Below are positions 12,001-15,000 of a stretch of DNA of 64,000 bases, one piece after another; within the stretch, counting starts at the first letter, position 1, and the number at the start of each line of letters is the position of its first letter. The stretch comes from Macrostomum lignano (Eukaryota). The notes beneath the pieces are model-generated. The model did not search any database. It saw only the letters and a program-made list of their open reading frames with translations, and was not told the origin of the DNA. A program made the translations under genes and the position numbers. The stretch is taken from NCBI GenBank assembly GCA_002269645.1, contig NIVC01000862.1, forward strand, positions 362,219 through 426,218. Direction: 5' to 3'.

Positions 12001-15000
12001 AAATCCCCAATTACTATATGCAGATTCTTAGGTGATTTATCAAATTAAGCAACAGCAAAAACATTTAAGTGACAATTTGGTTCGCTAAATATGTAATTGT
12101 TCCAGCGAGGACACATCCCGTATCTACGCGGCTCAGGTGGTGCTCTCGTTTGAGTACCTGCACCATCTGGACCTGGTCTATAGGGATCTGAAGCCTGAGA
12201 ATATCCTAATTGATTCTCAAGGATTTCTAAAGGTTTCAAATTAGTTTTACTCCTATAAATTCTTTTTTACTGAGCTTTTGATCACTTGCAAATATTTGTA
12301 AGGGAATTTTTCATAATCTGGAATTAGAAACTTTTTTCTTTTTTTATTCGAATTCTTATTGCGTGATTTTCACTGCTTTTGCGTATTCAGTAAGACGAAT
12401 TGCAGAAAAATTATTTTTTTTAAAACTATAATTGCAAATTAGAAAACTGCTAATATAGCTGTATGCCGATTCTGACGCTATGATTTTCAATATGTCTTTT
12501 TAGTCAATATCGATTTTACTATATTTTGTTCCTAATTCAATAATTATAGCGAGCCTCACTCGAGATTCTATGCAGCCCAAATCGTGCTCGGTTTTGAGTA
12601 CTTGCATAGTCTCGACCTCATCTATCGCGACTTGAAGCCAGAGAACCTGCTAATTGACAGTGTTGGCTACATCAAAGTAAGATTTTCTAAAATTTTAACT
12701 ACGCTCGTACTACAATCGTTTGTACAGTGAACTGAAGTACATGTAAGTATTCGTTGTTGTGTTGGTGCGATACTACATGTTGCTGCACATGTAATTGTTG
12801 ACGGATTTAAGGTTTTAGTGTAGATTGTATTTAACATCGTGTAAAAATCTGTCCAATAAGTCAGAATAAAACTTTGCGACCGGTTTCTACTACTTCTAGT
12901 AGCTAAATGTACTCGTATCTAGGTCTGCATGGAACCGAGGATTGTAAAGTCGCCCAGCCAATAGGAATTCAGCTGGGCTTTTAGTTTAAGAGCGGTTGGG
13001 CGGGGAAAGGGGGTAGAAAAATTAGGTCCAGCCCACGCCTAGCCAATGAGAGTTTAGCTTGGCGTTTACAATTCTGAGTGGGTGGACATGGGGTTAGAAA
13101 AATTTGGTCAGCCACCCAACGCCCAGCCAATCGAAATTCCGCTTTGGGTTCGTAGGGGCTAAATAGGACTGGTGAGTCACCCCGAGTACGATGGGGTTGA
13201 TAGAATCTCGCACAGCCAATAGAAATTCAGTTGGGGTTTGAGGGTTTGATAAAACTTCAGAGGGCTGAATTCTACACTAAGTCAACTCTGTACGCTCGTG
13301 GAAAACATTTTTAGCGATTTGGCGATAAGCGGTTGATAATCTAGAAACTAAAGAAATCGTTAATAGGAAAATATCCAAATATCCGAACAATTTCAATCTA
13401 CATGTAAGTTAGAAGTTGTATATTCCATAATTTTAACAAAAGAAGGGCAAAAAAGTTTTTGTATAAAATGCTATAAGCACAACTGAATTGCCCCTGAATG
13501 CTGTATTTTATAACTCTCTAGCCCTTATCTTTTGTAGCCATTATTTAAAACTACTAGAAACAAGATTCTATTGGGTTTTTTCGTAAGAAAAGCACATGTT
13601 GAAGATTGCACTTTATAGTATAGATATACTGTACTTCATGCTTGCACAATGAATATTAGCATTGATTGTTTTTAAAACTGGGTGTCTGTTCAATAAAACC
13701 ATTGAAAATATGATTTTTTGTTTGAAAAGAACTAAGTATTGTTTGCGCTTACCGTTGCTTGTGAATTATTATCTTTTTACTTTATTCAAAACTATTATTA
13801 CTGAAATTTATAATTGGTCCGGTTACTTCGTTTATGATTTAGGTGACGGATTTTGGTTTTGCCAAACGCGTGAAAGGTCGCACGTGGACTCTTTGCGGCA
13901 CGCCTGAGTATCTGGCGCCTGAAATCATTCTGAGCAAGGTGAGCAATGATAATGAGAAAAATTTAGCAGTGGGGGCAATTATAATAGTGGTGCTATTGTG
14001 ATAATTAACTAAATAGTTATCATTGACGGTAATTAACTAAATAGTTATCAGTGGCAGTAATTAACTAAATAGTTATCATGGGCGGTATTAATTTACCTAA
14101 ACAATTATCAGTGACGGTAATTAAACAAGTAGTTGTCAATCCTGCCAATTATTCAAATATTTACTAGTGGCGCTAAAATCAACAATTTTTATTGAGCGGT
14201 AAAAGTGATCGCGAAATAGGTTAAATATTAAACTATGGTTCTAAATGGTATATATAATTAGTTTATGATTTAAAAATAATGACGATTATTTCCAATTCCA
14301 ATTAGGGCTACAACAAGGCCGTGGACTGGTGGGCCCTGGGCGTTCTTGTGTACGAGATGGCCGCGGGTTATCCGCCCTTCTTCGCCGACCAGCCAATCCA
14401 GATCTACGAGAAGATCGTCTCGGGCAAGGTGCGCTTTCCCAGTCACTTCTCGTCAGATCTGAAGGACCTGCTGAGGAACCTTCTGCAGGTGGACCTGACC
14501 AAACGGTTTGGCAATTTGAAGAACGGCGTCAACGATATCAAATCGCACAAGTGGTTCGGTGCCACCGATTGGATTCAGGTATTTGTCCTGGGCAATTACT
14601 CGTAGAGGAAAGAGTCCAGATACACGTAGTTCCTGATTACTGTAGCCAATCAGAGCCTAGATAGTTCCTTAATTCTGTAGCCAATCAGAGCCTAGATAGT
14701 TCCTTAATTCTGTAGCCAATCAGAGCCTAGATAGTTTCTTAATTCTGCAGCCAATCAGAGCCTAGCTAGTTCCTTAATTCTGTAGCCCATCAGAGCCTAG
14801 ATAGTTTCTTAATTCTGCAGTTAATCAGAGCCTAGCTAGTTCCTTAATTCTGTAGCCAATAAGAGCCTAGATAGTTCCTTAATTCTGTAGCCAATCAGAG
14901 CCTAGATAGTTTCTTAATTCTGCAGCCAATCAGAGCCTAGCTAGTTCCTTAATTCTGTAGCCCATCAGAGCCTAGATAGTTTCTTAATTCAGCAGTTAAT

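Follow-up and report, generated by a model that had tools for sequence, protein, structure and literature searches.

A probable pair of mutually exclusive catalytic-loop exons in a gene of the flatworm Macrostomum lignano encoding a protein kinase A catalytic subunit

The stretch of DNA analysed here, hereafter the window, comprises 64,000 nucleotides (nt) from Macrostomum lignano (assembly GCA_002269645.1, contig NIVC01000862.1, positions 362,219 to 426,218), matches this contig at 100% identity over its first 25.5 kb and carries on its plus strand, at 8654-15473, a complete gene for a protein kinase A catalytic subunit (PKA-C), in which every exon boundary is AG/GT. This gene contains, between its exons 4 and 6, two successive exons of the same length, 5a (12106-12232) and 5b (12550-12676), which both encode the region of the catalytic loop. 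The present analysis addresses the anatomy of this pair, its conservation among M. lignano paralogues, its use in transcripts and its relationship with the exon cassettes found in PKA-C genes of other animals, in particular molluscs.

Exon 1 (8654-8714), recognized by its open reading frame and its donor site GGTGAGT, encodes MLMITIIRKLGNSRKDCPDD and the first base of a valine codon, and its start is the annotated coding-sequence start of the GenBank product PAA75788.1 (P0123), which maps to position 8654. It is followed by exon 2 (9001-9191, 191 nt), which encodes the A-helix and the Gly-rich loop, exon 3 (9263-9361, 99 nt) and exon 4 (11044-11126, 83 nt), which ends with ...GRF followed by AG and is left in phase 2. 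Downstream of the two cassettes lie exon 6 (13843-13938, 96 nt), which carries the DFG motif and the activation loop, exon 7 (14306-14578, 273 nt) and exon 8 (15333-15473), which encodes the C-terminal FSEF and the stop codon. A first-pass annotation of the window had proposed that the kinases made by this gene are multiplied by several N-termini, a proposal that found no support: a crude scan for phase-1 ATG exons, together with tblastn searches using the N-termini of relatives, yielded the single first exon at 8654-8714 and no alternative to it.

Either spliced product, with 5a or with 5b, aligns without gaps to residues 15-350 of solved PKA Calpha chains (phmmer, E = 6e-199). Residue 1 of the query thus corresponds to Calpha residue 15, and Calpha numbering is used throughout. 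The identity to human Calpha, calculated exon by exon (tblastn), ranges from 67 to 92% along the path that includes 5a and reaches 87% for 5b. The catalytic-loop motif, the activation-loop motif and the C-terminal FxxF are present in both isoforms. The 99-, 83-, 127- and 96-nt exons presumably correspond to human exons 4-7, the cassette being then equivalent to PRKACA exon 6. These four lengths, with their AG/GT boundaries, agree with the conservation of PKA-C exon lengths and intron phases reported across animals (PMC3625193). Soberg et al. (2013) include as PKA-C the proteins whose core is >75% identical to that of human Calpha/Cbeta (PMC3625193); the product of this gene was counted among them from the gapless alignment and the per-exon identities. 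Judged from these features, the gene encodes a bona fide canonical PKA catalytic subunit, i.e. a Calpha/Cbeta-like AGC kinase.

Exons 5a and 5b have the same length of 127 nt and are separated by an intron of 317 nt (12233-12549); both are preceded by AG, followed by GT, entered in phase 2 and left in phase 0. The phase 2 entry means that the AG of positions 11125-11126 is completed by a C to give a serine codon. Exon 5a, the variant or a-type cassette, has the acceptor TTCCAG and the weak donor GTTTCA, and 5b, the canonical or b-type cassette, has the acceptor TTATAG and the strong donor GTAAGA. Each of them covers Calpha residues 139-181, that is helix E, strand beta6, the catalytic loop YRDLKPEN and strands beta7-beta8, and ends just before V182-T183-DFG. 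The two cassettes share 32 of 43 residues when the split serine is counted, and 81 of 127 nucleotides. The likeness is far above what chance would produce, since a tblastn search with one cassette finds the other with E = 4.6e-19. Of the 43 codons, 13 are the same in both cassettes, 19 show synonymous differences and 11 non-synonymous ones, which corresponds to a saturated proportion of synonymous differences (pS = 0.84) and to a much lower proportion of non-synonymous ones (pN = 0.23). The 11 amino-acid differences are found at positions 141, 142, 145, 150, 153, 159, 163, 172, 177, 179 and 180; position 172 is an established residue of the catalytic spine, reportedly described by Kornev et al. 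in 2008. Y164, R165, D166, K168, E170 and N171 of the catalytic loop are kept by both cassettes, and 5b is identical to human Calpha at 38 of 43 residues.

As 127 is not a multiple of three, exactly one of the two exons is needed per mRNA. Splicing both of them in leads to a stop 19 codons into 5b, whereas skipping both leads to a stop two codons into exon 6. The first-pass annotation had described two 127-nt AG/GT exons 317 nt apart and in the same phase, identical at 31 of 42 residues (32 of 43 with the split serine), with a list of Calpha substitutions and a frame shifted by the inclusion of both or neither. All these details proved accurate, and the listed substitutions match the positions that the gapless Calpha alignment reveals.

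The M. lignano genome carries three groups of PKA-C paralogues, which are 93-97% identical outside the cassette: group A, made of the gene studied here (L001) and its copies L007 and L008; group B, corresponding to Mlig032677 (L005 and L006); and group C, corresponding to Mlig033349 / Mlig001504 (L002). At all the loci of the three groups, an a-type exon is followed by a b-type exon, each of 127 nt, in the same phase and with intact AG/GT boundaries. When paralogues are aligned, exons 4, 5a, 5b and 6 match but the introns, including the one that separates 5a from 5b, cannot be aligned even with a word size of 7; conservation ends exactly at the splice sites of both cassettes. One copy of paralogue B (Mlig032677g3, P0243) has a product whose C-terminus is frameshifted after ...VYKK, which reflects decay of this copy or else an error in the assembly.

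Rough estimates of the ratio of non-synonymous to synonymous substitution rates (dN/dS) were obtained between paralogues by the Nei-Gojobori method on 42 codons. They amount to 0.17, 0.19 and 0.09 for the a-type exon, with dS between 0.75 and 1.9, and to about 0.02-0.03 for the b-type exon wherever dS can be estimated. Synonymous changes exceed non-synonymous ones in every pair (Fisher test, p from 8e-5 to 2e-15, and from 8e-5 to 2e-8 for a-type pairs), and the comparison of 5b between groups A and B gives pN = 0.04 and a saturated pS of 0.79. At a shorter evolutionary distance, the three recent group A copies display about 3% differences across the region of exons 4-6 and none at all in 5a or 5b. 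The low dN/dS, the intact cassettes and the introns diverged beyond alignment together indicate that both exons are under purifying selection. Furthermore, the six M. lignano cassettes form a single clade in none of 500 bootstrap replicates of a neighbour-joining tree, the a-types and the b-types each clustering across paralogues; the exon duplication is therefore older than the gene duplications. The view, already expressed in the first-pass annotation, of an old duplication with both copies kept under selection is thus borne out by the paralogues, with their low dN/dS for both types and their saturated synonymous sites.

Concerning the use of the two exons, PAA75788.1 (BOX15_Mlig002500g1) corresponds to the 5a isoform, with 100% identity over its full length. 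The 5a product is also given by two near-identical gene copies (P0242) and by an older UniRef model, A0A1I8GYP9 (P0001). In the latter model, the 273-nt exon 7 is left out without a change of frame, probably as an artefact of prediction. More generally, annotated products of groups A and B contain the a-type, and those of group C the b-type. To judge from this annotation, the dominant form in whole-animal RNA appears to be the a-form in the case of this gene and of paralogue B, and the b-form in that of paralogue C. The 90%-identity clusters around the proteins of this gene hold the a-form products of GenBank and UniRef and one sequence from another species, and no 5b form; a fragment search with the a-cassette returned one M. 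lignano fragment, which is of the a-form. The annotation of the assembly was built from RNA sequencing data (StringTie, TACO), a mapped de novo transcriptome and TransDecoder open reading frames, and minor isoforms were removed from it by a TACO isoform fraction of 0.75 (PMC5730564). Because this pipeline discards minor isoforms, the lack of a 5b isoform in the annotation is little informative. As to 5a, its possible status of pseudo-exon, considered in the first-pass annotation, does not hold: the inclusion of 5a rests on a transcript-derived annotated product and 5a is not a pseudo-exon. It is rather 5b that has no direct transcript record for this gene.

How the choice between the two exons could be enforced was also considered. 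Exclusivity by steric hindrance or by incompatible U12-type sites was ruled out, as the intron of 317 nt is too long and all the sites are of the U2-type GT-AG class. A pair of 19-nt segments, located at the start of 5b (12561-12579) and in the downstream intron (13192-13210), is 84% complementary, but about 0.35 such pairs are expected according to a rough estimate and no counterpart is found in paralogues B and C, so that this pairing was attributed to chance. The donor of the a-type exon is weak (GTTTCA in group A, GTTTAT in group B), that of the b-type exon is GTAAG in all three paralogues, and the a-type acceptor TTCCAG is invariant. A regulated competition between 5a and 5b is plausible.

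In the intron directly upstream of 5a, at 11661-11962, a 23-nt unit, AGGTGGTAAGAAGATCTAATTAC, is repeated about 12.5 times, every repeat having a donor-like AGGTGGTAAG and an acceptor-like TTACAG. This repeat may be a plain minisatellite; nonetheless, it places many splice-site-like decoys beside a regulated exon.

Taken together, the data make it very probable that 5a and 5b function as a mutually exclusive exon pair that arose by tandem duplication of a 127-nt catalytic-loop exon. They combine equal length, the same phase, complete splice sites, homology, non-productive outcomes when both or neither are included, and purifying selection on both. According to this interpretation, the exon encoding helix E, the catalytic loop and beta7-8 was duplicated in tandem before the three PKA-C paralogue groups separated, and each group kept both copies. 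Transcripts with both exons or with neither, which meet an early stop, would presumably be removed by nonsense-mediated decay. One gene would therefore give two catalytically competent PKA-C isoforms with identical catalytic residues, differing at 11 mostly conservative sites of the hydrophobic core near the active site, including position 172. In this respect the first-pass idea of one gene making two kinases retains its value, since the gene can encode two forms with differences in the region of helix E, the catalytic loop and beta7-8.

Several observations nevertheless weigh against this interpretation. No transcript or protein record of 5b from this gene was found in the annotation, which gives one isoform per locus, or in the protein collection, and the search was equally negative for the paralogue C a-type exon. 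The a-type, clearly the less constrained of the two, changes several times as fast as the b-type, which fits relaxed constraint as well as specialization, and the dN/dS values are rough, the exons being short (42 full codons) and dS being near saturation. In addition, the reading frame is the sole mechanism of exclusivity in evidence; a conserved intronic RNA pairing able to enforce the choice was found neither in this gene nor in paralogues B and C. One could imagine that one exon of each gene is a silent relic: after the gene duplications the paralogues would have sub-functionalized, the a-type being the only one used by this gene and by paralogue B, and the b-type the only one used by paralogue C, with the idle copy constitutively spliced out and not yet decayed. 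The annotation, with its single form per locus, a in groups A and B and b in group C, and the missing records of the alternative forms agree with such a scenario. However, the supposedly unused exons show the same degree of conservation as those in use: this is the case of 5b between groups A and B, with the very low pN and saturated pS given above, and of the a-type exon of paralogue C, whose dN/dS against A and B lies within 0.09-0.19 while the introns are beyond alignment. Splice sites are intact in every copy, and a pipeline that drops minor isoforms says little by its silence. A silent relic is thus very unlikely, and 5b would be used in this gene as well as 5a.

The first-pass annotation had pointed to a precedent for such a pair in molluscs, and this precedent could be verified at the genomic level. 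The Pinctada locus (L010) carries two 127-nt AG/GT exons (20745-20871 and 21146-21272 of that locus), 274 nt apart, the canonical one coming first and a variant of the VLEYLHHLDIMY type second. Lottia gigantea (KB202050.1, L004) carries three tandem 127-nt cassettes (15355-15481, 15817-15943 and 16370-16496), the first of which is quite divergent; no product containing this first cassette was found. In gene models from bivalves (Pinctada, Mytilus coruscus and Mya), the two cassettes are fused in tandem. The variant cassette is present in RefSeq isoforms or cloned cDNAs from Mytilus, Saccostrea, Dreissena, Biomphalaria, Lymnaea, Physella and Octopus, and both cassette types occur among the listed Biomphalaria proteins, in a RefSeq isoform and in a UniRef entry. 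The mollusc variant cassettes form a clade with 85% bootstrap support. By contrast with these arrays, Echinococcus (a cestode) and Helobdella (a leech) each have a single cassette.

The duplicated unit is the same in molluscs and in M. lignano, namely a 127-nt exon encoding residues 139-181. This does not extend to orthology of the a-type with the mollusc variant: the a-types join either the VLEYLHHLDIMY variant or Lottia cassette 1 in none of 500 bootstrap replicates, and the only residue in common with the variant is H159, found in two of the three paralogues. In the cassette tree, where 43 residues give bootstrap support too low to resolve the origin of the a-type, the a-types and b-types each group across paralogues and the a-types stand apart from the mollusc variant.

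A screen of 145 PKA-C proteins, comparing the divergence inside and outside the cassette, was topped by two sequences that rank above the known mollusc variants. The first one, from Perinereis aibuhitensis (P0254), displays 13 changes over the 43 cassette residues versus 5 over the 252 others; the second one, P0140, from the EukProt set of Siedleckia nematoides, displays 8 over 43 versus 2 over 252. P0140 is evidently an annelid-like animal contaminant in the transcriptome of this protist. P0140 and another sequence, P0160, share I172, F179 and L180 with the flatworm a-type, and they join the a-types in the neighbour-joining tree with 21% bootstrap support. In P0254, P0140 and P0160, nearly all the changes lie within the cassette, which hints at the existence of variant cassettes in annelids.

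Besides the catalytic-loop exon, a Branchiostoma lanceolatum PRKACA model (P0131, 400 amino acids) contains two consecutive versions of the activation-loop segment. Amphioxus may thus possess the exon equivalent to exon 6 as a tandem duplicate, which would be a separate candidate for mutually exclusive splicing.

Two histories can be considered for the flatworm and mollusc duplications. They could derive from one ancestral lophotrochozoan array, lost in lineages such as leeches and tapeworms, an account that we regard as possible but somewhat doubtful. It would explain why the same exon, of 127 nt and in the same phase, is involved in Pinctada and Lottia with a similar spacing (274-424 nt), and why the divergent cassette of Lottia lies upstream of the canonical one, as in M. 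lignano. The cassette-concentrated divergence of the annelid or annelid-like P0254 and P0140, which is the signature of the mollusc variants, points the same way, as do the a-type residues I172, F179 and L180 of P0140 and P0160 and their clustering with the a-types. Nevertheless, that clade has only the low bootstrap value already given, the a-types never join the VLEYLHHLDIMY variant or Lottia cassette 1, the bivalve variant lies downstream of the canonical exon, opposite to the order in M. lignano, and Helobdella and Echinococcus have a single cassette. Moreover, the residues in common are conservative changes that recur in single-cassette species (Owenia, cestodes).

The flatworm duplication could instead be independent of the mollusc one and convergent, the exon being a self-contained structural module with a frame-breaking length. 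We consider this slightly probable, and rank an independent origin somewhat ahead of a shared one. Apart from H159 in two of three paralogues, no diagnostic residue is common to the flatworm and mollusc variants; the cassette order is reversed relative to bivalves; the b-type amounts to no more than the canonical cassette of bilaterians; and the single cestode and the single leech examined lack the duplication. Against independence, 43 residues carry little phylogenetic signal, and the cassette-limited divergence of the annelid-like sequences hints at a wider distribution. A more far-reaching version of common ancestry is that the mutually exclusive catalytic-loop exon of PKA-C is an ancestral lophotrochozoan trait and not a peculiarity of molluscs, with an a-type (I/L145, I172, F179, L180) whose Macrostomum and annelid representatives are orthologues, and with an array of several cassettes, up to three as in Lottia, kept for >500 million years in several phyla. 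This is rather unlikely; were it true, it would imply that two or three versions of the kinase core answer a conserved physiological need.

The surroundings of the pair are rich in repeats. Other introns of the PKA-C gene hold large tandem arrays, at 9438-11002 (39/77-nt units, about 20-40 copies), 14002-14138 (a 28/60-nt array) and 14627-15247 (17.7 copies of a 35-nt unit). These intronic arrays fit the 15% of tandem and simple repeats reported for the M. lignano genome (PMC5730564). Four long satellite arrays lie upstream of the gene, at 9-1594 (121 copies of a C-rich 13-nt unit, CCCTCTCTCCTCA, with a GC skew of -0.89), 1970-3104 (60 copies of a 19-nt unit), 3517-4766 (312 copies of GATA) and 5659-6636 (49 copies of a 20-nt unit). 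On the other side, the neighbouring gene, on the minus strand at about 17866-22786, is annotated as encoding a 669-amino-acid protein with a bZIP domain. L007 and L008 are followed by this neighbour too, so that the recent duplicates form syntenic blocks.

PKA-C is the textbook kinase, of which vertebrates vary the N-terminal tail alone, and splicing would here swap its helix E, its catalytic loop and a residue of its catalytic spine. M. lignano is genetically tractable (transgenesis exists) and could therefore show what the two cores do differently, a question that dates from the work on Aplysia. Substrate choice, affinity for the regulatory (R) subunit or for PKI, stability and localization are all possible differences. 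The pair also widens the range of catalytic-loop exon swapping beyond molluscs, and makes the alternative between an ancient origin and the repeated duplication of one exon testable.

A literature search on mutually exclusive exons in the catalytic subunit of PKA from invertebrates gave no match. In Aplysia californica, a single PKA-C gene is said to produce the forms A1 and A2, reportedly described by Beushausen et al. in 1988 (Neuron 1:853, PMID 2483106), through mutually exclusive splicing of alternative catalytic-loop cassettes of about 42 residues. The mechanism is therefore already known in molluscs; what is new is the flatworm case, the presence of the pair in three paralogues and 5a as the annotated form. 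Like the M. lignano pair, the mollusc cassettes, as seen in Pinctada and Lottia, are tandem 127-nt AG/GT exons with the same position and phase. The M. lignano pair differs from them by its host, a flatworm (Macrostomorpha), by a variant located upstream of the canonical exon rather than downstream as in bivalves, and by its retention in three paralogous genes. The signatures differ too: D/P141, T/V142, I/L145, I172, F179 and L180 characterize the flatworm variant, whereas V153, L154, H159, I162 and M163 characterize the mollusc one.

Equal-length tandem exons, only one of which is chosen, are also known from the JNK genes MAPK8-10 (exons 6a/6b) and from p38alpha (MAPK14), where the catalytic residues stay the same while their surroundings and the partner preferences are altered. 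These belong, however, to vertebrate genes of another kinase family and concern another segment of the fold, and the duplications are not homologous. Finally, the mammalian genes PRKACA (Calpha1/Calpha2) and PRKACB (Cbeta1-4) resemble the M. lignano gene in that each of them produces several PKA-C isoforms on the same exon skeleton (PMC3625193), but they do so by means of alternative first exons, with changes restricted to the N-terminal tail, whereas in M. lignano it is the catalytic core that would be swapped.

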